Part shown: one piece after another, positions 6,627 through 64,000 of the stretch
Position numbering within the stretch: position 1 is the stretch's first letter
How the letters are laid out: the number at the start of each line of letters is the position of its first letter
Program-made: the position numbers and the translations under genes
Notes under the pieces: generated by a model
Seen by the model: only the letters and a program-made list of their open reading frames with translations
The model's database searches: none
Told to the model about the DNA's origin: nothing
Assembly: GCA_021613535.1 (NCBI GenBank)
Contig: CP075492.1
Location: forward strand, 11,780,001-11,844,000
Direction: 5' to 3'
Source: Adineta vaga
Taxonomy: Eukaryota; Animalia; Rotifera
Length of the DNA stretch: 64,000 bases

Positions 6627-7640
6627 TTATGCACTTAATCGTTTTGTTAATTCTGTAATATCAATTAAAGTATGATCATTAGGAGTTCGATCAGTTTGTG
6701 TTGTTGTTAAATCAACTGCTGATAAGACTTGTTGTCCAATTGATGGAGAACGATGACGAATTATATCAGTTCGATCAGGTTCACGGAGAATACTATTACG
6801 AATAGTTTGAGGAATGGGTATATTTCGTAATAGATGTTGTCCAAGACGATTAGCAAGGCGGTTATTTCGAGCATTGTGCACGAGACTTATAAAAACCATC
6901 ATTAGAAGGATTATAACACTTTGTGAAATAATGAAAATAAAACTTGGTCCGACAGCATGTTTTCCATTCGTATCATGATCATCATTCGATGAAATATTAC
7001 TTATAATTGTATGACAGGTAAAGATTTCTCTTAATGTACTCATTGATGTAAGATTTAACAGAAGATATAAACAAACATTATGTGGTAATTCTTTGTTAGT
7101 CATATAGTTGACAATAAAAGATGATCCATTGACACATATATAACTGAGAGATGGTACAATTTGATCATTATGTGCATCAGTAATAAATAAAGTTTGATTG
7201 ACAATTGATCCATCTTCAACAACATAAGGTATACTAAATATTACTTGAATATTGTTTGATAGGGACGAATGATCAGACGATTCGTCGGATTCATTGGATT
7301 CATCGGAATCATCATGGCTATCATCGCGCTCAGAATACTTGCTTATTGCAACTTTCTGTCGTGATGACATGGCTGTTATAAAACTGAGAGTTTGATTTTG
7401 ATTTTGATACTTAATTGTATGTTTTGATTTTTCAGTATCCATTGCTTGTATCAAACATTTGTGCGATACGTATGTGCCATCTGGAATAAGCATCAGTTGG
7501 CTCATTTCTTCATTATTGTCATCTGATAATTGACGCGACTGAGTTTTTCGGTGAAAAACTGAATGATCTCTACTCGTTTTACCCAAGAGACAATTCAGAT
7601 TTATTACAAAAAAACATATACAAATTAAAAGACGTGACAT
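6627..7640 (-). CDS. Orphan type I single-pass membrane protein (intronless)
   Basis: First ATG at 7640 (the ORF track starts at an upstream TTG). Hydrophobic signal peptide, Asp/Ser-rich tract, several NxS/T sequons, TM FIFIISQSVIILLMMVFISLV, basic cytosolic tail. Confidence 0.7.
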   Translation of the reverse strand: MSRLLICICFFVINLNCLLGKTSRDHSVFHRKTQSRQLSDDNNEEMSQLMLIPDGTYVSHKCLIQAMDTEKSKHTIKYQNQNQTLSFITAMSSRQKVAISKYSERDDSHDDSDESNESDESSDHSSLSNNIQVIFSIPYVVEDGSIVNQTLFITDAHNDQIVPSLSYICVNGSSFIVNYMTNKELPHNVCLYLLLNLTSMSTLREIFTCHTIISNISSNDDHDTNGKHAVGPSFIFIISQSVIILLMMVFISLVHNARNNRLANRLGQHLLRNIPIPQTIRNSILREPDRTDIIRHRSPSIGQQVLSAVDLTTTQTDRTPNDHTLIDITELTKRLSA

Positions 7641-8494
7641 GTACAAGTCCGATAATAGAGAAAATGAAAGTTAACGTCGAACTCTAAATGTATTATTCAA
7701 CGTCTGTATTTTTGTATTTAAATCACAATTTACTCGCATATTTTATGTCATGATATAGTACTTCCAGATCGATCATTGATGTATAATAGACTCCTAATCA
7801 TATAAATGTTATGTTGATACACTTTATCGATTAGTGAAAAACATTGCGCATCTAATATTCAGATCGACTCAGAAGATCTGCATATCAAAAGAGGTCACTA
7901 ATATATGGGTAAGTCAAAGACGATGATATCTTACAATAAAGAAAATAATTGCAACGAATGAAAAGACTATTTTTTCTCTTTCTTTCTCTTTCTCTTTCTA
8001 ATAAACAATAATAATCAATGTGTCTGCCTAGAGAAATCGATTTTCATTTCTATTTGTACATCATCGTCAATAGTCAATACTCGATAACCCACCATAAAGT
8101 ACATATATTTCATTTTACTCTTAGACGAGAAATATTCTAAACTTTAAACATTTTTGTCTTCAATCAGTAAGTACACCAACATTGAGCGAGAGAGAAAAGT
8201 TCAGCATCTCTTTGATTTAATTGAATTAATCAATATTAACATTACTTGTCCACAAAATAAATCTCGACAAAGAAATTTGTGTACCACATGACTTTTACTA
8301 GAAAATACAGTGAACAATCTTTATATAATAACACGTGTACCGAACACGTGTTTACAACAAAGTACAACTGAAAGGAATGAAATGTACTTGTTGGATCCCA
8401 GACGGCAATGCTTATTTAAGACTGATGTAAAAACATATGTGTCTCTCTTTTAGATCGATTCTTTTTATTTTTCTTCGTTGATATTTCATTGAAA

Positions 8495-9497
8495 ATGAAT
8501 CAATTAGAAGGTCGAAAATTGAAAATTTCAGTTGTGACACCTAGTCATAATCGTTTAGAATATTTAAAAGTTGCTGTTATGTCTGTTCAAGTCAATGTTC
8601 TTGCACCACTTGATATTGAATTTGAACATATTATTCATGATTGTGGTTCAACTGATGGAACAAAAGATTATTTCATTAACAATTTACCACCTCAACGTAT
8701 TTTCTATATCAAAGATCAAGGTGATAATAAAGAATCAACTAAAGATCGTCAATGGATTCAAGCAACTGAAGATTTACGAAAAGATGGCAAAGGTGAATTA
8801 GCTGATAATATAACATTTATTCGATCAGAACATAAAGTTCCACCAAGTCAAGCACGAAATATTTGTATTCAAAAGAGTACTGGTCAATTTATTTGCGTCC
8901 TCGTAAGTTCATAATCAATATTTAAAACGAAAATTTTGATTATTAAATATCCTGTAGGATGATGATGATGTTTTCCTTCAACGTACTATTCATAATTTTG
9001 CATATGCAATTTTACAAAATCCAACCAAGAAATTCTACATCTCGGATTTTCTTCGTGTTAATGAACATCTTCAATACATGACCAAAGAAGATTATTATGG
9101 ATGGGTATTTTCATCGCCACAAGAAATGCTTCAAGCTATTTTCGATAGTTGTCATTTTATTCAAGGTATGATTATTAATTGTTATAGAATATGTTTAATT
9201 TTTATATTTAATTTTTCTCTAGGAAATGTTTGTTTCAGTAGAAAACTGTATGAAGAAGTTGGTGGTTATGATGAATCTGTTGGTATGGCTGAAGATTTAG
9301 ATCTTTACGTAAGATTTCTTATTCATGGTCATTTGAATGTTTATTTACCAATGATTTCACATTTACATCGTATGCATACGGCCAATTTTTCAATTGGTTG
9401 TGATCGAGATAAACATTATTCCGATTTAACCGAGATTTATAAACGTAATGAAGATAAATTAAAAGTTATGGGCATTCAATTAAGATTAAGCAAATAA
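8495..9497 (+). CDS. Glycosyltransferase family 2 (GT-A fold), bacterial-type, 3 coding exons
   Basis: Exons 8495-8902, 8958-9165, 9223-9497. Motifs KISVVTPSHNR, HDCGSTDGT, SQARN...STGQFICVL|DDDD, LYEEVGGYDE, AEDLDLYVR. No signal or TM segment. Confidence 0.9.
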
Positions 9498-10475
9498 GAA
9501 ATGAACAAGTAGTAAAATTTAGATTAACAATTATGTAGACTTGAGATTATAATTCAATATTTTTTTGTATTTGCATGATTGAAGTTTCTCTTTCTCAAAC
9601 GTTAAATATCGTTTTATATACAAGCAGGACTGTGAGTGTGTGCGTGCGTTTACATTTGTCTTTCTTTTTTAAACAAGCTTTAGAAATATACGACGATAAA
9701 AATCGAATAAAATGTGATAAAATTTAATAAAAATGTATTTCTTTATTATTAACTTTGTGGAGCTATTGAACGATGGATGTGAATGAAATAAATTTACATA
9801 TATAACTTAATTATGAAAGGATAAATCATCTCGAAAAATTACTTCGCTCAATTGCAATGGATTGAAGTACATACGGATCAAATTATTGCACCCAAAAACA
9901 AAACCTACATTGCATCAACTTTACGCAACCATAAACATGCATGACATTCTGTATATCCTTTGTAGATGCTTCCTTTTAAATTTCAACGTTTCGGCTTATT
10001 TATTTTTCCAACATGCCGATGAGTAAAATATTTTTTGACAAATATTTGTTTGTGCACGTGTCATGTAGGATATAGACCACACGATGACACATCGAAAACT
10101 ATGAGTAAACTCATACACATTTACATGATTTTCGCTTTTTCTTTCGTTTCTTTGATGACTAACACATCTGTACACACAATAGTCGCTTGCGATAAAACTT
10201 GTAAATGATATGTAATGAATTTAAATATAGTTCGTTCGTCTTATACACAACAAAATTCTCAGACAGTTGTAGCGAACAGCATGTCTTTTACATTAAAATC
10301 CTGTTTTATTTGATAATTGGGATGATTTTCAATTTCTTTCATTCAGTAAGTTTCTACTAGATCTTTCAAAAGTGAATGACAAATTTTTTCATGTAAAATT
10401 CTTATTTAAAAAATGAATAAGGTTTCAATACATTTCTTCTATACTGATGTTTCAGTAGAATTCGTTGGAATCTTA

Positions 10476-10766
10476 TTATCCTCCATGTTGCTTGCCATCT
10501 TGATCTGTCTTACTTCCAGAACCGCTGTCGTTTTCAGGAGGAGTCCTCAGATCATTCTTAAAACGAAGTAAAAATAAGTTTTATAGACAAAATGCGTTAT
10601 TTAATTACTTTGTTCTCCGTTGACAATAAAAGTATAGAGACTTCTAAATGAAGATAATAGTTCGTTTTCTACGAAAGTAATTCATACACTTACGAGTATC
10701 AACATGAATATGGTCGAATGAACCATTTTGGGTACGATGTCCCACTTCGTTGTTTACTGAAGACAT
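10476..10766 (-). CDS. 62-aa hydrophilic orphan micro-protein, 3 exons (absent from the ORF track)
   Basis: Exons 10766-10694, 10643-10609, 10556-10476 joined by 50- and 52-nt GT-AG introns give MSSVNNEVGHRTQNGSFDHIHVDTQVSILLLSTENKNDLRTPPENDSGSGSKTDQDGKQHGG*. The other two phases of exon 3 hit a stop within three codons. Confidence 0.55.
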
Positions 10767-11621
10767 AACAAATTGCTCTAAATTAGATAAATAACATGTC
10801 TTAAGCAACGATAAGATTTACGATTGTTCTTCTTCTATAGAATTCTAAGAAAAACTGAGTAATTCATATCTTACGGAATGTAAAAGATTATATTTGTATT
10901 CAAATGATTCCGTTCGTTAACAAAACTCGAAAGACATAAATAGCTAACTGTAAAAGATCCATGTGTCATTACATTTTTTCCAAGCTTAACCGCCTGATGT
11001 TGTCTTTGTCATGAATAATGCTGTTATATTAACGATATTGACTCTATTTAATCATGATAAAATGTTTATCAGACAACTAAAACTTAAAAGATACCATGAA
11101 AATAGAATCATCTTTCGAACTTTTCGTAAATCGTAGAGCGATATTTGTCTCAAAGAGTATGGAAGATGCTTTCAATAGAACCAAATCTCATTGTACTAAG
11201 TTAGATTACAATTCATATCGATTATCTTACTTGTGTTGTATTACAATAATTTCTGACGTTGATCAAAATTTTTTCACTTGCTCTGTTTCAGATTTTTGTG
11301 CCATTATACACACACATACATATATACAGTGTGAAATATACGAAATTTTATATAAAATTACCTCATGGTTTATATTCTCTTGCTTTTGTCTTCTTCTCAT
11401 GCAAAAGATTTTACAATCGATGTTGGAAAAAAACCAAGTTACTTTATTTTTTTTCAAGTATTACTTCAATTATTCATTGAATAGAGTGGCAAACAAAAGA
11501 ATCTAGTTTGATTCCTATTTTTCAACATAGATGCAAATCTTTCAAACATGACCGATGAACACAAAACAAACAACGAAAAATATCATACAAGAAAGAAAAA
11601 TCATTGATCTCATTGTTTGTT

Positions 11622-13131
11622 CTATTTAGAAATTTGAATTATATCATCATCGATACGATTGATATTCAATTGTTTATTTTTCACAAGTAATTCAAAATAA
11701 TAATATTCGGTTTCAGAAAAATTTTGACGTTGAATTACAAATGGTTCAGATGTTTCATTCGATTGAATCAATTGATTAAGAAGAGAATCGATCTGCGAAC
11801 GAAATTCATCTGAAATAGCAATACACGAAAGCATATTTTCGAGATCATTTCTAAAACGAAACCGAAATTAAATAGAATTCAAATGAATAAAATAACTTAC
11901 GAATTTGTTTCTTGTAATGTAAATGTTTGATCGGATTTTTTCTGTTTTAATACATCTAAAGCATGATTTATTTTCGTAACTTCATTTAATATATCTCGAT
12001 TTTGTGGATCAATAACAACCGCTTTCGATAGATATTTTTTTGCTTCATCCAATTGATTTAATGATCGAAGTGATACACTTGCACGAAATAATGCTTTTAA
12101 ATTATTGGGTTCAATAACGAGAGCATCACGACATGCTCGAAAACATTTTTCAAAATCATCCAAACGAAGATAACATTGTGCTAAAAGATGACATGAACAA
12201 ATAGCAAATGAACGAAATGTTTTGTGTTACATTTACCTGAATTCAAGTGAAGTTTTAATAACAATTGATGATATTGTTCTTCATGTTTACCATCGATCAA
12301 TGTTACTTTATTATGAATTAATTGTCGAGCTTTATTATAACTTCGTAATGCACGATCTAATTGACCATTGGCATATTCTTCATTGCCAATATTACGTAAT
12401 GATTGTGCTAATCGTATTCGTTTGGCGAAATCATCGATTTGATGTCGATTTGTTGGACTTTTTATTAATAATTGATCATCATTGAAGATCGTTGATGGTT
12501 CATTTGTTATTAAAAGTTCGAATACATATAGACACCACGCTGATTCAGGTATATGTGGAATACAACCAAGTTCACCATATAATAAATCACTACTGATAAT
12601 AAATTTTGCACGTTCACGTCGTTGCATTGTACTAACAGCAAGATCAATACCAGGAAGAACATCACATTTTCCACTACGAAATTCAAGTGGACGACGACGT
12701 TTGAAAGATGTATCAAATGGTTCATCTCGATGTTCGAAATAAGCATAATAATGTAATCGACTAGAGAATCAAAAAGAAATTGAAACTAGCATCAAATCTA
12801 ACGAAATAACTTACACACAAGCACCCAGAGTTGGCTTTTGTCCAATTCCATTATGAATTGTTTCTTTCCATATTCCACCTTTCAATTCAGTATCTAATAC
12901 ATTATCATTCTTCATCTGTCGTCCATCAATTCCATTTGTTGAAATAATATGTTGCATTTTTGTAGTTTGTTCACTGAATGATAATGTTCCATCAATACGT
13001 CGTTGTCGATGGAATGGTTCAATATGAGGTCCACGATTATATCGAGAATTAGGATCATCTTCTTCATCAAGATTGGTATTCAAACCATCATTTTCACTGA
13101 TATTTATTGGTTTGACTGATATTGATTGCAT
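11622..13131 (-). CDS. FKBP6: FKBP6/Shutdown-like inactive PPIase-TPR co-chaperone (4 exons)
   Basis: FKBP domain HYYAYFEHRDEPFDTS...MQRRERAKFIISSDLLYGELGCIPHIP, matching the FKBP6 YGxLGCPPxIP pattern; TPRs GNEEYANG, EPNNLKALFRA. Confidence 0.85.
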
Positions 13132-57584: not shown

Positions 57585-58132
57585 ACAAGAAAATAAAAAG
57601 AGACTTCTTTTCTCTAGTATAATTATTATCTATTCAGAAAAACAAAAAATAAAACTATCTTTTAAGAAACAATGAAATTGTTTATTTACAATTCGTTAGA
57701 AAAACAAAGAACTTTTCATACATTCCTCAACTGAAATAGTTTCATTCAGATATATGAAGAGATCATGGAAGAATATCGTCTCATAATAATCCTGTCTAAT
57801 CCGTTTTTAAATATTTATATAAAATGATTCGATACATGTCAGTAAATCAATCAATGGCAAGAGAGAGAGAAAAAGAGAATATACTATAAAAGCGTTATTC
57901 TTATTTTCTTTTTCGTAGTGTGAAAGCAAAAAGCAATAAATACAAGTGAAATTAGAAAAACAAAAGTTTACAGAGCAACGCTTTAATATTAATTACAAAA
58001 AAAGCATGTTGTATACAAAAGAACAACATTTTATTCGTTAATGACAGAAGAGAAGAAAAGATCATATGAGTTCATCATCATCGATTATTCACTTGTGAAA
58101 TGTATTTGAATTAAAAGAAAATAAAAACAAAT

Positions 58133-58405
58133 TCACAAAAGACAACAGATTTTTGTACGTTTTTCTTTTGCATGATGTGTATTGGCTGTTGTCGGTGGAT
58201 GCGGATTAATTACTACAACAGCTGGATCTTCACCACCACCAAGTAAACCAGTTGAACTTCCATAAGATGTTTGAAATTGATATCCTTTACTTTGTCCAAT
58301 ATTGCCTAAAGCTATTCCGCCAGTTGCAATACTATTCTTTTTATGGTGACCACGTTGTTTTTTCTTGAAAAATTCTTTACTTTGAGATTTACTCATTGGA
58401 TCTGG
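58133..58405 (-). CDS. Terminal exon encoding a polybasic + CCLL CaaX tail (most likely the last exon of the WD40 gene)
   Basis: Acceptor ttcttttatag at 58406, then phase-0 PDPMSKSQSKEFFKKKQRGHHKK...KEKRTKICCLL*. Confidence 0.7.
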   Translation of the reverse strand, partial: PDPMSKSQSKEFFKKKQRGHHKKNSIATGGIALGNIGQSKGYQFQTSYGSSTGLLGGGEDPAVVVINPHPPTTANTHHAKEKRTKICCLL

Positions 58406-58494
58406 CTATAAAAGAAAACAAATTCAAGAAAAATCAATCGATCATTTCATTTCAACTAATCAAAAGGCGAAAAAGCAAAAAAACGACTAGACGA

Positions 58495-60078
58495 CTAAAC
58501 AATATCGCTTTTTCTATCTAAATCATTTAGAACTAAATTATTCGTTAATGTTAATGGCGCTGTCCTAATCTTATAATCAGCTTCAAAACAAGATGAACTA
58601 TGTCGTTTAACAAGTCCTGTTTGGTGACTACTATCAAATGAATATTGTTTTCCAACAACAGGACCAAGTCGAGCACGAGTTAATGGTGTTGAAAAAGAAT
58701 TATGTGAATATTGTCTAGCGTATGCACAACGATGATATGATGTTTGATAAGATGTTTTTTGCACATGTAATGAATGTAAAGAAGTTTTAACCATGCCACA
58801 ACTACTTGTTGAATCTTGTAAAGGAATAGATCCTTGTTGTTGTTGTTGTTGTTGAGTTTGTGAATGAACGATATGTGATGCACCATTGGAACCACTTAAT
58901 TCACTATGACGTCTTGATTCAATGGATGACCAATGAAAGAATCGCCGTCGAAAGATCAGAAATAAGAAATCATATAAGAATTTTTTTAATTCACGTCGAA
59001 ATAATTCTCCTGTAAATGTATATAAATAAAATCCACAACCATGATCAAGATATAATAAAAATCTCATGATTCCATCGGATAAAATTAAATATTTTTTTTC
59101 ATAAGTTAAATATGGTTCAATAACTGAAAAGACTCGTAATGGAAATGTTAATAATAGAAACAGAAATGTTGATACAAATAGAATATATGCTAATTGTGTA
59201 TCACGTGGTGAACGTGTTTGTCTTATACCTAATTGTCTCATTAATATACGTGACCGACATACAGAATAAACTACACTTGCATTAGCGATTAAAATAATAA
59301 TAAATGGTACAAGAGAATTGATAATAAAATCCATCCAAGAGAAATAAAATGTGAGAAAATAATCATAAGTTTGAACGGGTGGTCGAACTAAATTCGAACT
59401 GCACATAATTATTAACTTTGCTTCTGTTTGATTATTTGTTAATAGATCATTATTTTCTTCTTCCGATCCAAAAAAGATTAAATAATGAATATTGAGAAAG
59501 AATAAAATTGTATAGATAAATATCAATGTACAATATGAATGTTTATGATTGAAAACATTTTGATTCCATACAAATCGTTTTGTTACAGCTGCACGTTCAA
59601 GTGAAATGACACAGAGAATCCATACAGCACAATGTGAAAAATAATTTGTAATAAATTTATATGTTCGACAAAGATAGATTGAACGTTGAAGAAAATAAGA
59701 TTGAAATGAATAACGTATCATTAAACGAATACAATTTAATGTAATTAAAATTAAATCCTAAAGAAACTAAATAAGTATATTTTATTATTGAAATGAAAAA
59801 AAAACAATAATAATAATAATAAAACAAGAGCTATACGGCAAACAAAGAATATTTACCATAAAACTTTCGGCAACAAATAAAATTGAACAACCAAATTTTT
59901 GAAATTTCTTTCGTGTAAATATTAATATTGTTAATAATGAACCAATAAAACCAAATGGAAATAATAACCAAGGATAAATACGATGAAAACGTATGACATA
60001 GGCAATCACAGTATCATTGGACATATTTGATGTTGATATCGTATAGAGATTATAATATTCGAAATGTTCGATATTCAT
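58495..60078 (-). CDS. Class A (rhodopsin-like) peptide-receptor-type GPCR, 2 coding exons
   Basis: Exons 60078-59857 and 59757-58495 join in frame; TM1 FPFGFIGSLLTILIFTRK, LCRTYKF, WILCVISLERA, NSLVPFIIILIAN, FLLLTFP, FYLYTFTGELFRRE. Confidence 0.9.
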
Positions 60079-61085
60079 TCTTAGAAGAATTTCCTATCTG
60101 ATATTATCTATATCAAAGATTTAGTCTTTATATTTATTATTCATACTCGCCATGTAATAAACAAGGTTAAATGAAGTCAAGATTTCATATATGTTATCTA
60201 TCTATCGACACTCGATGTCTTTTGTTTCTCTCTTTATTGTCGTTGCTGTCAATACTTTAATAGAGAGATATTTGCCTTGCTCATCTATATACTTCAAAGA
60301 TGTGTTTCTTCGGGGCAAATAGGAGAGAAATTTTACTCTATTTAGTTATATCCCTAATGACTTCAAGTCCTTGATTCTATCTTAGGTCGAATGTTTTTAT
60401 ATGAAATAACTGAAATATACTTTCTAGATCGACAAAAAAAAGCACCTTCGTGATAATTATAGAGAAAAAAGAAGTTTTTGACAAGATCGAAACATGTTAT
60501 GCATCTCGTCAAGTTAGAAAAATGCGAATGAAATGGAAAGAAAAATATGAAATAAATGCTGTTTGTCATGAAGAATAACACGATATTAATGCCATCATGT
60601 TCTACTTAATTACTTAGTAATAATAAGTCAACATAAATATATGGATATATACAAGAGAGTATGAACACATCTCTTGTCATTTCCATGTGTATACAAATGT
60701 ATATATAAAAATTCTAAGACTGTTGTCACTGTCAATGGCGTTGTTACTTTTCTTTTTTTTTTGTCTGTGAGGCATAGTTTTTTCTTTGTCTTTTGTGTTA
60801 ATTAATGGTAATTGTACGACTTATTGTATAGTTTTTTTTCTTCTGCTTTTCTTATTTTATATCAATCGATCAATCTATGATGTGACGTTATGTTGTCTAT
60901 CGGCATGACACATTCATAGAGATTTTTCTTGAAAATAAAACAAGAATGTCTAACATTGATATTCTCAACATGCAACTGTCAAACATGTCGATGATTAGTT
61001 TCCGATTGATGATTTGCGTTAACAATAGTTTCGATTCAAGCTGAGAAGAGAAAATAAATTCATAACTAAGAAAACGGAAACCTAC

Positions 61086-63991
61086 GAGAACTGTATCAGC
61101 AACAATTTGATCGGTTTTGGAACTATGTCGAGAATTCGTTAATATATTTGCATCTTTTGGATAAAGAAGTGGTTTAGGTTTGATTGGTAATATCATATTC
61201 GTTGTGTCCGAAAACACTAAAGAAAAATAGACTAATCAATTATTTTGTTTTTTAATATTTCAATAAATGTACTTTGACTATGACGTTGTGCCAATTTTGA
61301 AGCATCATTTGATGATATGTTAAAGAGACTAAGCATTGCAACGCATGAAGTATTCTGTAGAATTGCTGCATAACGACCTATATATTAATCGATGAAATAA
61401 TGAAAGAGAGTATTATTTAAAATTATTTCTTTTGTACCTCCGTTTGGTGAAATATTGAGTTTAACAAGATTATGATTAAAATGAAATGTAGCTATATATA
61501 TGCCTGTTATAGTCGACCAAACAGACAGAAGACCATCATGAGAAGCTAAAAAAGACATCAACATATGAAGAAATAACTATCTCGAGAAATGTATTGCTTT
61601 TTACCAGTAATCGCAATAGTGCCATCAGTTGTCAATGATACACAGACAATGGCAGTTTTATGTCTTAGAAGTTTATAAACAACAGTACCTAAAAGAATTC
61701 GATAGAGAATTTTTTTCGAATAATAAGCAAATCTTTACCATCTTTGAATAACCAAAGAATGGCTTGTCCCTCTTTGTCACCAGTTAGAACATATTTTCCA
61801 TCTTCACCTATCGCTACTGCAGTAATTGATTGTTCATGTTCGACGAGAACCTGTTGAATTTGAAAAAATTCATTTATAATTATTGCATCTTTTGATTTTA
61901 CCTGTGTCAATTTGCCCGATGATAACTCCCATAATTTACAACTACAATCTTCACCACCTGTAACTAGATATTGTGAATCTGCTCGAAAAGCCATACATGT
62001 AATCTTTCCTTCTGTATGATCAATTGAACGTACAACACGTGCATCATCCAAGGACCAAATTTTCAAACTAAAATTTGTTTTATCAATATCATCGTCATCC
62101 CTACTAAACTCTTACATATTATCGCCATTTCCCGATACAACATATTTTCCATCGGGAGATACAGCAAGCATTTTACATGGTACATTGTACTAAAAGAAGA
62201 AAAGATAATCTCTTCTTGATAATATCAAAGAAATTTAACGTACGGAATCAATTAATTCACCCGTATTCGCCCACCATGTTTTAATATAATTTTGTTCATC
62301 ACCGGAAAGAATCTTGCGATTATCTTCTAAGATACGTAGATGTGATATTGGAGCTGAATGTGCCTGGAAAAAAATTGAATTTATCTTTTATAAAGAGAGA
62401 AATTCGATCTTTATATTACTGTAAATTCAGTAACAATTTCTCCCATTTCATTATCAAAAACTTTGACGGTTGTATCTTTTGAACCCGATAAAGAAAATAG
62501 ATAAGAATGCGAAAGAGCAACTTGTGTAACTGGTGCACGATGATCAACACTCTGTTCAGTTAATTCTCCATCGATTAAATTAAATAATCGAACAATCCCA
62601 TCAGCACTTCCCGCTATAGCTACGTCACCTTCACGTGAAATTGATAGTGCCGTTGTAGGAATTGATGATGGCAAAGATTCATCATTAGGAAAACCATTAA
62701 ATTGTTGTTTTACATTCAACACATGTATAGCATTCTAAAATTAATCGATCGATTGATTGCCTCGATGTCATTGAGAGAGAAAGACAAATGTTAACATACT
62801 TCTGCAGCAGAGAAAAGAAAACAATTATCTGCGGAAACATAAAGATCAGTCACAGCTGATTCATGATGTGTCAATGTTCGAAGAAGAAGACGAGAACGAA
62901 AATTATAAGCATAAACATGTGAATTGCTACAACCCACATAACAACATACGGAATCTTGGGATAATGCAAGACTGGTTACCTTAGAAAGAAACAAGATATG
63001 AATTCGATAAGAAAATAAAAAGTAAAATCTTCGTTTGCTTCTATTTACTTCAGCAGAATGTCCTTCAAGTCGATGAATATCACTTCCTGTTACTAACGAT
63101 TTCACTTGTACAGATGTATCGTCACAGGCAGCAATAATAAATGTATCATCAGTTGATATGATCATATGTCGGATAGGTGATCCAACTGTATCAATAATAT
63201 CAAGTAGTTGCATACCACGAAAAGTCCATCGTTTTATAGTTTGATCTCGTGATGCTAGAAATAATTCGAAGATATTCTCTTTCCATTTGTCTTTCGTTAA
63301 TAGAATACAAACCTGAAACTAGAATTCCATCATCTTGAGTAATTGCAACTGCTGTAACAGCATCAGTATGTTGTTCAACCGAATGTTCGACTTCTCCAGT
63401 TTCAAGACGAAGTACAACAATTAAACGATCTCGTGAACCAGTTATAATATGTTCATTATTGTGTGAAACAGTCATGCAGAGAATTTCATCTTGATGTATA
63501 CTAAATGAAATAAACAATTCATTTTTTTTTTCGATTGAAAATTCTCTATCAAATTTTACTTGTAAGTATTTTCTAAATCACCCGAATTTAGATTAAATAA
63601 TTTAATCGTTCGATCGGTTGATGCTGAGACTAAATATTTATTATTATAAGTTAATCGTATCGATGTTATCGATGCTGCATGACCTACAAAACAACGTTTA
63701 CAACGCCATAGAAAATCATTTAAAAATATCTACTAGTAAATTTCTTCACTAATTTTTTCGATGGAATATGATACATTGCTATGTCATGTTGTCGTGTTGC
63801 ACAAAAAACATGTTGATTAAACGTTGTTGGTATTATTTTGAATACACCATCAGGACATGGTAGAATGGTTATCGTCATTGGTGGAATTGTTGAAATCCAT
63901 GATGAAAGTGGTACAAAGACCGGCGAACCACACGATTCACACCATTCATGTGCTTGAACGTAAAGAGATTCAATATGTTCATTATAACGAC
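61086..63991 (-). CDS. NACHT/WD40 (NWD1/NWD2/qui-1-like) protein, 3' WD40 portion; 5' end lies beyond the window
   Basis: Many GH...WD-type repeats across small exons (HTDAVTAVAI, GHSAE|VTSL, LVTGGEDCSCKLWE), preceded by a WCE...PVFVPLSSW segment that resembles the NWD family. The NACHT domain itself is not in the window. Confidence 0.75.
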
Positions 63992-64000
63992 CTATTAATA

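Follow-up and report, generated by a model that had tools for sequence, protein, structure and literature searches.

A GPCR gene nested on the same strand within the last intron of an NWD1-like gene of Adineta vaga, with an apparently shared 3′ end

The window, by which we mean the whole 64,000-nucleotide stretch of Adineta vaga DNA that was analysed, contains on its reverse strand a nested gene pair that is real, well conserved and of a known kind. We consider it likely that the locus as a whole is a same-strand pair in which an NWD1-like host gene carries a complete GPCR gene in its last intron, owns the final exon encoding a CaaX tail, and shares the 3′ end of transcription with the GPCR. 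The features on which this reading is built are collected in Table 1.

Table 1. Features of the host and nested genes (positions in the window)
Feature	Position	Strand	Description
Host upstream WD40-repeat exons	61273..64000	-	Pfam WD40 matches and RNA-confirmed introns; gene extends past the window end
Host penultimate coding exon	61086..61216	-	43 codons plus 2 bases; RNA joints 61216/61273 and 58405/61086
Host last intron	58406..61085	-	2680 nt, GT..AG; whole GPCR gene inside; RNA joint
Conserved non-coding block upstream of GPCR	60522..60644	-	79–93% nucleotide identity in Adineta and Rotaria
GPCR exon 1	59857..60078	-	222 nt, 74 aa, ATG at 60078; 79–93% aa identity to orthologues
GPCR intron	59758..59856	-	99 nt, GTAAAT..TTTAG, phase 0; placed from orthologue proteins and the open joined frame
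GPCR exon 2	58495..59757	-	420 aa plus TAG; ends ...DRKSDIV-stop; RNA contigs 59079–59663 and 58376–58922
Proposed GPCR donor GT	58499..58500	-	Bases 1 and 2 of the final Val codon; no sign of use
Spacer, GPCR stop to tail acceptor	58406..58494	-	89 nt; transcribed contiguously with both; without AATAAA/ATTAAA
Host last coding exon (tail)	58133..58405	-	90 codons plus TGA; RNA joint, phase 0
AATAAA	58030..58035	-	Nearest canonical poly(A) hexamer 3′ of the two stops

The host gene and its splicing over the GPCR

By its domains the host is an NWD1-like STAND NTPase with NPHP3_N/NACHT, HTH_NWD1 and WD40 regions, as a previous sequence-only reading of this DNA had supposed. Against Pfam, NPHP3_N scores 40.3 bits, above its cut-off of 24.8, and NACHT scores 23.4 bits, under its cut-off of 26.7; the HTH_NWD1 matches on two adjacent exons (27.8 and 26.7 bits, cut-off 27) are marginal because an intron splits the domain, and PF25469 is present in orthologue gene models. 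The NACHT and HTH_NWD1 exons lie about 500–2260 nt past the window end, in the adjoining sequence, and the host exons within the window match WD40 and beta-propeller families. Twelve upstream introns, all of 48–69 nt, are spliced out in RNA contigs, in line with the earlier remark that most introns here are about 50 nt; the last intron is roughly 50 times the usual length in this gene. The penultimate exon, which is kept in all bdelloid loci examined, is preceded by an AG at 61218–61217 and ends at a phase-0 donor (GTT CTC/GTAGGT). Some RNA coverage just 3′ of this donor (60834–61032) leaves room for a read-through host isoform ending at 60897.

The sequence-only reading had given a phase-0 donor, a phase-0 acceptor and 2680 nt between them, all of which agree base for base, and had reasoned that the host must splice over the GPCR to the CaaX exon. 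The predicted joint (61086/58405) is found in RNA contigs of runs X1 (depth 13.6) and X2 (depth 9.39), both from one study, where 2680 nt are skipped between CT and AC on the forward strand, equivalent to GT..AG on the reverse strand; only 30 nt anchor it on the tail side, the length (k-1) at which a contig stops when the assembly graph branches, and the rule for “bridging” asks for one letter more. The joint is absent in runs X3 and X5, though their contigs cover the exons. Neighbouring introns of 56–60 nt are spliced out in the contigs that carry the joint, which therefore derive from RNA and show the host spliceosome linking 61086 with 58405, with the entire GPCR skipped. Since the frame also stays open from the WD40 exons across this joint down to KICCLL-stop, the coding sequence of the NWD1-like host finishes in the CaaX exon.

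This tail exon is directly preceded by TTTTATAG, and its phase-0 translation starts with PDPMSKSQSKEFFKKKQRG and runs through a polybasic N-terminal stretch and the motif GEDPAVVVINPHPP to KEKRTKICCLL-stop. The polybasic CCLL tail described earlier is thus correct as to sequence, with prenylation putative. Having Cys at -4, a C-terminal Leu and polybasic residues upstream, the end fits a CCaX-type CaaX box with X = L, by sequence a geranylgeranyl-type (GGTase-I) box with a second Cys, and its predicted lipidation would tether the host protein to membranes. All tail relatives share the pattern K(E/G)K(R/K)(T/A)K(I/F/V)CC(L/V)L; amino acid identity to the tail of the C6 homoeolog is 69%. The three codons (PDP) between the acceptor AG and the first ATG show solely synonymous changes in 8 loci, and dN/dS within Adineta is low (0.11–0.21 for the tail, 0.06–0.21 for the tail with the last WD exon), so that the comparison shows an exon that is coding from its acceptor onward.

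The nested receptor gene and its conservation in bdelloids

A complete two-exon GPCR gene had been reported on the same strand inside the interval, and we find it there, with exons spanning 60078–58495, wholly inside the host last intron, and a 494 aa product. The product is by its Pfam match a rhodopsin-type GPCR (7tm_1, 44.1 bits, cut-off 30.5; exon 2 E-value 2.3e-11), with six hydrophobic segments at Kyte–Doolittle values of at least 1.5 and a weaker seventh around residues 300–320. Its 55 relatives are each bdelloid-labelled or unlabelled, the orthologues carry PF00001 and PF10324, and identity across bdelloids is 56–86%. For exon 1, an end at 59851 proved wrong and 59857 correct, the latter boundary agreeing with the orthologue proteins P0002 and P0003. 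The GPCR intron was not seen spliced in the RNA contigs, which break at a repeat there, and exon 1 is covered by contigs in one of the four runs. Translation of the GPCR closes with DRKSDIV and a stop codon of its own, and 89 nt separate this stop from the tail acceptor. Upstream of the gene, the conserved non-coding block with its TAATTAAG core gave no Rfam match and no convincing fold. R. socialis and R. magnacalcarata have it upstream of their intact GPCR copy alone, and it is probably a promoter or 5′UTR element of the GPCR.

The order of last WD exon, GPCR exons 1 and 2 and tail exon is found in both homoeologs of the genome (C3 and C6), and the synteny of the nesting is likewise kept in Adineta ricciae, A. 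steineri, Rotaria sordida and Didymodactylos carnosus. Seven more loci, belonging to six other bdelloid species or homoeologs, repeat the arrangement, which is therefore not chance. Frames are open in 8 loci, and on these comparisons host and nested gene are both intact and evolve under purifying selection.

Rotaria socialis and R. magnacalcarata depart from this order, with the module duplicated in tandem. The host copy has its tail, with the NWD1-like gene call stopping exactly at the tail stop codon, and its last intron holds only relics of a decayed GPCR (33–35% identity, 5′ half missing). The intact GPCR lies 5–6 kb downstream, flanked by a decayed relic of the last WD exon and a frameshifted, truncated relic of the tail. 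The host copy thus keeps the tail and the intact GPCR has only relics, and the tail therefore belongs to the host. As the copies show, the whole module was duplicated in tandem in these two species and its copies then decayed reciprocally, which ended the nesting.

The 3′ ends of the two genes

It had been suggested that the two genes share the tail as a coding exon, or have co-terminal transcripts, or both. Co-termini fit the RNA, where each of the four runs has contigs that pass unspliced from the GPCR stop across the tail acceptor (X1 58376–58719, X2 58376–58922, X3 58112–58538 and X5 57882–58633); a shared coding exon is not supported. A hexamer scan of the sense strand found no AATAAA or ATTAAA from 58990 to 58035, and RNA contigs end at 58034–58112, with one at 57882, though assembled contigs are blind to transcript ends, strand and relative abundance, and drop rare variants. 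The AATAAA at 58035 is probably the 3′-end signal of both host and GPCR, the tail exon appears to be part of the 3′UTR of the GPCR mRNA, and co-terminal transcripts of the two genes are plausible. The contiguous contigs could also stem from host pre-mRNA that is still unspliced or from residual DNA, and coverage elsewhere in the intron is low in X3.

In the mechanism that we propose, GPCR transcripts would remain unspliced at the GPCR stop and run through the tail exon to the poly(A) signal, such that the last coding exon of the host would double as GPCR 3′UTR and the two mRNAs would be co-terminal. A common terminator would spare the host premature cleavage within its intron, and this sharing may account for the persistence of the nesting in Adineta, Rotaria and Didymodactylos. 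More tentatively, it is possible that the second, non-coding role of the tail exon, as GPCR 3′UTR and terminator, locked both genes together through the bdelloid radiation, with escape only via duplication of the whole module, as in R. socialis and R. magnacalcarata.

The GPCR might instead have its 3′ end within the short spacer, or be barely expressed, in which case the contiguous RNA would be host pre-mRNA, retained intron or DNA and no 3′ end would be shared. The low intron coverage elsewhere in X3 and X2 (bins 60038–60634) fits this, as do contigs that show neither ends nor strand and a GPCR exon 1 that is uncovered in three of the four runs. However, RNA coverage within the intron piles up on GPCR exon 2 rather than in the 5′ part, no AATAAA/ATTAAA lies between the GPCR stop and 58035, and the spacer, 29 to 293 nt in other loci, is so short in C6 (29 nt) and A. 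ricciae (48 nt) that a separate signal and cleavage site would hardly fit. We thus regard this alternative as unlikely, and keep a shared 3′ end as the preferred reading.

The sequence-only reading also suggested a prenylated GPCR isoform. In this view some GPCR transcripts would, at least in Adineta, splice from 58501/58500 to 58405 and so acquire the polybasic CCLL tail; such a minor isoform would be a prenylated seven-helix receptor. The letters allow it, since the GPCR ends GAT ATT/GTTTAG (58506–58495) and the GT at 58500–58499 would give a 95-nt phase-0 intron up to the tail acceptor. A. ricciae, A. steineri and both A. vaga homoeologs (C3 and C6) share this GT, the gene model deposited for A. 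steineri (P0003, 575 aa) contains this very join, and a minor isoform could be lost where contig assembly drops rare variants. However, no 58501/58405 joint occurs among the assembled RNA contigs of the four runs, all of which have the contiguous form, and the GT, which belongs to a Val codon, is not conserved: three Rotaria species and D. carnosus lack it (the letters are ATT in R. sordida, TTT in R. socialis and TTA in D. carnosus). The intron would be 35 nt in C6, shorter than any host intron observed (48 nt or more), the GPCR proteins keep RKS(D/A)(I/V)(V/F/I/L)-stop as a conserved terminus, and in R. socialis and R. magnacalcarata the GPCR is intact beside the broken tail relic. A second fused model (P0044) patches a premature stop in its copy. 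Taken together, a GPCR with a CCLL tail seems improbable.

Least credible of all is that the tail is a separate gene, an 87-aa ORF from the ATG at 58396 and an exon of neither neighbour: though this ATG is conserved, the tail is annotated separately in A. ricciae, R. sordida and D. carnosus (87-, 90- or 69-aa products), and an exhaustive search of 1.84 billion representatives found as its sole relatives 6 small bdelloid-type proteins and none outside bdelloid-like sequences, RNA joins the tail to the host exon, the tail has a conserved, strong polypyrimidine-AG acceptor, the three codons that precede the ATG vary only synonymously, and the annotated NWD1-like model ends at the tail stop in those Rotaria that lack an intact nested GPCR.

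Comparison with known systems and meaning

Intronic host/nested pairs of other metazoans resemble this one in having a complete gene in one intron, with both genes transcribed and the host splicing over the nested signals. The earlier statement that nested genes are usually antisense was overstated, as a survey of such pairs in mouse and human found both orientations to be broadly similar in frequency (PMC11694760). Mammalian nested genes favour 5′ introns (PMC11694760), whereas here the last intron is used in a genome with introns of about 50 nt. Additionally, intronic polyadenylation interferes in host/nested pairs (PMC3192792, PMC13309782). Here, unlike in the mammalian pairs, the nested stop lies only 29–293 nt from the last host exon and the host terminator is seemingly borrowed, and this apparent common poly(A) site would avoid the conflict of premature polyadenylation.

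A similar example is found in the cholinergic locus, where the first intron of ChAT houses VAChT in the same orientation and the two have a common 5′ non-coding exon. The same-strand nesting, the long conservation and the common terminal part of the transcription unit are alike, but as in a mirror, with the 5′ end shared there and the 3′ end here. We know of nothing that ties the NWD1-like protein functionally to the GPCR. The protocadherin and UGT1A clusters, where variable upstream units are spliced in phase to common 3′ exons encoding the C-terminus, are the model for the shared-exon idea; sharing of this type was not found, the GPCR never being seen spliced to the tail, its donor not being conserved, and the GPCR being kept without a tail in R. 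socialis and R. magnacalcarata.

The host tail has the layout of the CCaX boxes of small GTPases and PRL-3, a polybasic stretch and then Cys-Cys-aliphatic-Leu at the extreme C-terminus, and RalB itself ends in CCLL. The brain isoform of Cdc42 is prenylated and palmitoylated on the adjacent Cys (PMC13236570, PMC5095905), though this dual modification is not found on every CCaX protein (PMC5095905). The difference here is that the box, with lipidation predicted from the letters, is carried by a large NACHT-WD40 STAND protein. For the earlier statement that NWD1-type proteins end in a CaaX-like motif, a literature search found no paper tying NWD1 to CaaX in a relevant way. We also found no description of a NACHT-WD40 STAND protein that is tethered to membranes by a polybasic CCaX tail.

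Public annotations of the locus are wrong in three ways, with the host truncated by read-through, the tail called as an orphan gene of 69–90 aa, or the tail fused to the GPCR, and same-strand nesting is therefore a systematic blind spot of gene callers in compact genomes. The pair is a clean natural case of a same-strand nested gene coexisting with its host where introns are about 50 nt long. Rotaria provides a natural experiment, in which duplication and reciprocal decay un-nested both genes and assigned the CaaX exon to the host without bench work. For the host family, the locus predicts a STAND protein of the NACHT-WD40 type that would be tethered to membranes by a polybasic CCaX tail.

Splicing of the host gene across the GPCR

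The host is an NWD1-like NACHT-WD40 STAND gene on the minus strand of the window, which is C3:11780001-11844000, and its last intron holds a GPCR gene on the same strand. The exons, the phase-0 boundaries and the 2680-nt interval between the last two host exons match the window sequence as the sequence-only reading described them. Its "NWD1-type" label is also right, given the domain families on the host exons and in the orthologous gene models of other rotifers: profile searches, run exon by exon, found WD40 and beta-propeller matches on the upstream exons within the window, and NPHP3_N/NACHT and an NWD1-type winged helix on the exons just past its end (locus L013).

Features of the nested locus, with the duplicated modules of Rotaria
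Feature	Position	Strand	Details
Host penultimate coding exon	61216-61086	minus	after AG; ends CTC/GTAGGT, phase 0
GPCR exon 1	60078-59857	minus	
GPCR intron	between 59857 and 59757	minus	99 nt, GT..AG, phase 0
GPCR exon 2	59757-58495	minus	
Host last coding (tail) exon	58405-58133	minus	preceded by TTTTATAG; reads PDPMSKSQSKEFFKKKQRG...GEDPAVVVINPHPP...KEKRTKICCLL-stop
Non-coding block	60522-60644	minus	123 nt; inside host intron, 445-565 nt 5' of GPCR ATG
Duplicated modules, R. socialis	L015:3841-4937 and 8164-11760		
Duplicated modules, R. magnacalcarata	L023:2582-3701 and 7428-11728		

Contigs from four runs that we guessed to be RNA (X1, X2, X3 and X5) were placed on 57650-63600. They lack each of the twelve short host introns (48-69 nt, GT..AG throughout after stated cut shifts) and are therefore RNA. 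That the host splices over the whole GPCR to the CaaX exon is borne out by X1 and X2, two runs of one study, where 61086 runs straight into 58405-58376 and the 2680 nt skipped are bounded by GT..AG. The tail side of these contigs has 30 letters only, which is the k-1 overlap where the assembly graph branches and one letter below the threshold for bridging records; the fork at 58405, between host exon and contiguous genomic sequence, is informative in itself. With every RNA-confirmed joint in place, an open frame leads from the WD40 exons to KICCLL-stop. An unspliced form running from the GPCR into the tail occurs in all four runs (X1 58376-58719, X2 58376-58922, X3 58112-58538, X5 57882-58633).

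The splice sites 61086, 59857, 59757 and 58405 are all phase 0, so the frame would also be kept by joints from the host donor to GPCR exon 2 and from GPCR exon 1 to the tail; the RNA contigs show neither. Three runs have loose contig ends at 58641 and 60579, which might have marked alternative joins or a duplicate of the segment. Both prove to be contigs of other loci that match the window by chance over a short length: one 30-mer sits at C6:2503692 and has only an 18-nt word in common with the window, and the other does not occur in the assembly. Apportioning the tail exon between two mRNAs by contig depth was dropped, since contig depth cannot rank parts of a gene. Read-through of the host to the stop at 60897 was considered as a conserved alternative end; at 62 codons in C3 (the contig of the window) against about 18 in the homoeolog on C6, it is not conserved.

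The tail exon is host coding sequence

The three codons that lie between the acceptor AG and the tail's first ATG read CCN GAY CCN in eight loci and differ only synonymously, which argues that the tail is translated from the acceptor and not as the free-standing 87-aa ORF of several annotations. Its dN/dS within Adineta is 0.11-0.21. Exactly one other copy exists in the genome, on C6 (69% amino acid identity). No Pfam family matched the tail, and an exhaustive protein search found it in six small bdelloid-type ORFs only. At synonymous sites the tail diverges less between A. vaga and Rotaria (58133-58405 against L015 and L021; pS 0.29-0.34) than the neighbouring last WD exon does (0.45-0.47), and the first ~55 and last ~35 nt are almost identical in nucleotides; this could reflect splicing-enhancer or 3'UTR constraints, on a small sample with AT-rich codon usage.

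The nesting itself is conserved. The order penultimate WD exon, last WD exon, GPCR exon 1, GPCR exon 2, tail is common to A. ricciae, A. steineri, R. sordida and D. carnosus, and is found on C6, where the homoeologous last WD exon is followed by the homoeologous GPCR (65% identity) and, directly after it, the tail. In the bdelloid loci with this order, the last host intron measures 2152-3984 nt and the spacer from GPCR stop to tail acceptor 29-293 nt. Public gene calls at L014, L018, L020 and L021 are inconsistent for the locus. The annotated host ends by read-through past the last WD exon in A. ricciae, A. steineri, R. sordida and D. carnosus, and the tail appears in public annotations as an orphan gene of 69-90 aa or fused to the GPCR. 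Adineta retains the downstream neighbours, and Rotaria part of them; these are NTF2 (opposite strand), a kindlin-like FERM/PH gene, two EamA genes and a mitochondrial carrier.

The module of last WD exon, GPCR and tail has been tandemly duplicated in R. socialis and R. magnacalcarata, with reciprocal decay of the copies. The NWD1-like gene is continuous with the upstream copy, and its deposited gene call stops exactly at the tail stop; the last intron, of only about 1.1 kb, contains broken but recognisable GPCR remains (33-35% identity) that lack the 5' half. In the downstream copy the GPCR is intact, with 493 or 495 aa. A decayed relic of the last WD exon lies 5' of it; 3' of it is a tail relic that loses its frame after about 20 codons, is then interrupted, and lacks the CaaX end. 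R. sordida, sister to these two species in the GPCR tree, has a single nested form at the locus examined. Taken together, this argues that selection has preserved the tail as part of the host rather than of the GPCR.

The nested GPCR and its ends

The GPCR gene is intact and conserved, and it has a stop codon of its own. A two-exon GPCR on the host's strand is present as proposed, with the implied end of exon 1 off by two codons, because the open reading frame runs six bases into the intron. The joined product of 494 aa matches Pfam 7tm_1 (44.1 bits, cut-off 30.5) and has six strong and one weaker hydrophobic segments; the nearest labelled relatives are A. ricciae and A. steineri.

From the GPCR stop to 58035 the sense strand has no AATAAA or ATTAAA, and the first poly(A) hexamer, at 58035, lies 98 nt beyond the tail stop codon. 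The spacer is 29 nt in C6 and 48 nt in A. ricciae, which leaves hardly any room for a separate GPCR 3' end. Together with the contiguous RNA contigs, which do not show transcript ends, this favours a poly(A) site shared by host and GPCR as the most likely arrangement, though part of the contiguous GPCR-tail RNA could be unspliced host RNA.

A prenylated isoform, with the GPCR spliced to the CaaX exon, had also been proposed. The GT at 58500-58499 is there as described, in phase 0 and 95 nt ahead of the tail acceptor, but no 58501/58405 joint occurs in any of the four runs and the contiguous form occurs in all. This GT is the start of the final Val codon of the GPCR; other genera end in ATT, TTT or TTA and so have no GT there. 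The receptor C-terminus is kept as an end (RKSDIV, RKSDIF, RKSDVF, RKSAII, RKSDIL), and the putative GPCR-tail intron in C6 would be 35 nt. Two deposited models fuse GPCR and tail, P0003 (A. steineri, 575 aa) with the very junction proposed and P0044 (D. carnosus) by bridging a premature stop in its GPCR copy through splicing to the tail; both are predictions and were rejected as evidence for a shared coding exon. From the contig evidence, nothing supports such an isoform in Adineta, where one may exist at most as a rare form. The second D. carnosus GPCR copy (L017:3300-3480) has a premature stop ~30 codons before the ancestral end, with the ancestral ...DRKSNIL-stop still legible in a different frame, the result of a frameshift or of an assembly error.

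Upstream of the GPCR, the non-coding block is more conserved than the surrounding coding sequence, with nucleotide identities of 93% in A. ricciae, 86-88% in A. steineri and R. sordida and 79-81% in R. socialis and R. magnacalcarata. A TAATTAAG core lies within it, as does a short ATG...TGA stretch. The idea of a non-coding RNA gene was rejected, since the block has no Rfam match and its consensus fold is weak (-8.5 kcal/mol), with an unfavourable covariation term. At the duplicated Rotaria loci its counterpart lies only 5' of the intact GPCR, and this association, with 79-93% identity over 123 nt between Adineta and Rotaria, suggests that the GPCR may be driven by its own promoter.

Comparison with other nested genes and a proposed mechanism

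Nested genes are common in animals on either strand. In mouse and human, same-strand and antisense pairs occur about equally often, with a preference for 5' introns (PMC11694760). For bdelloids, the literature searched held passing mentions only. The rotifer locus is a well-documented further case of animal nested gene pairs, unusual in its last-intron position, its apparently shared terminal exon, its persistence in a short-intron genome and the documented escape from nesting through duplication.

In the mechanism that we propose, the host splices over the GPCR, a step seen in the RNA contigs, and the GPCR mRNA would take the last host exon as its 3'UTR along with the host terminator. A shared terminator would remove the premature-polyadenylation conflict known in mammalian same-strand nested pairs (PMC11694760, PMC3192792). 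The literature searched held no paper linking NWD1 with a CaaX box. The polybasic CCLL tail would be geranylgeranylated, with the second Cys possibly palmitoylated, as in CCaX proteins (PMC13236570, PMC5095905), and a tail lipidated in this way would put the NWD1-like protein on a membrane.
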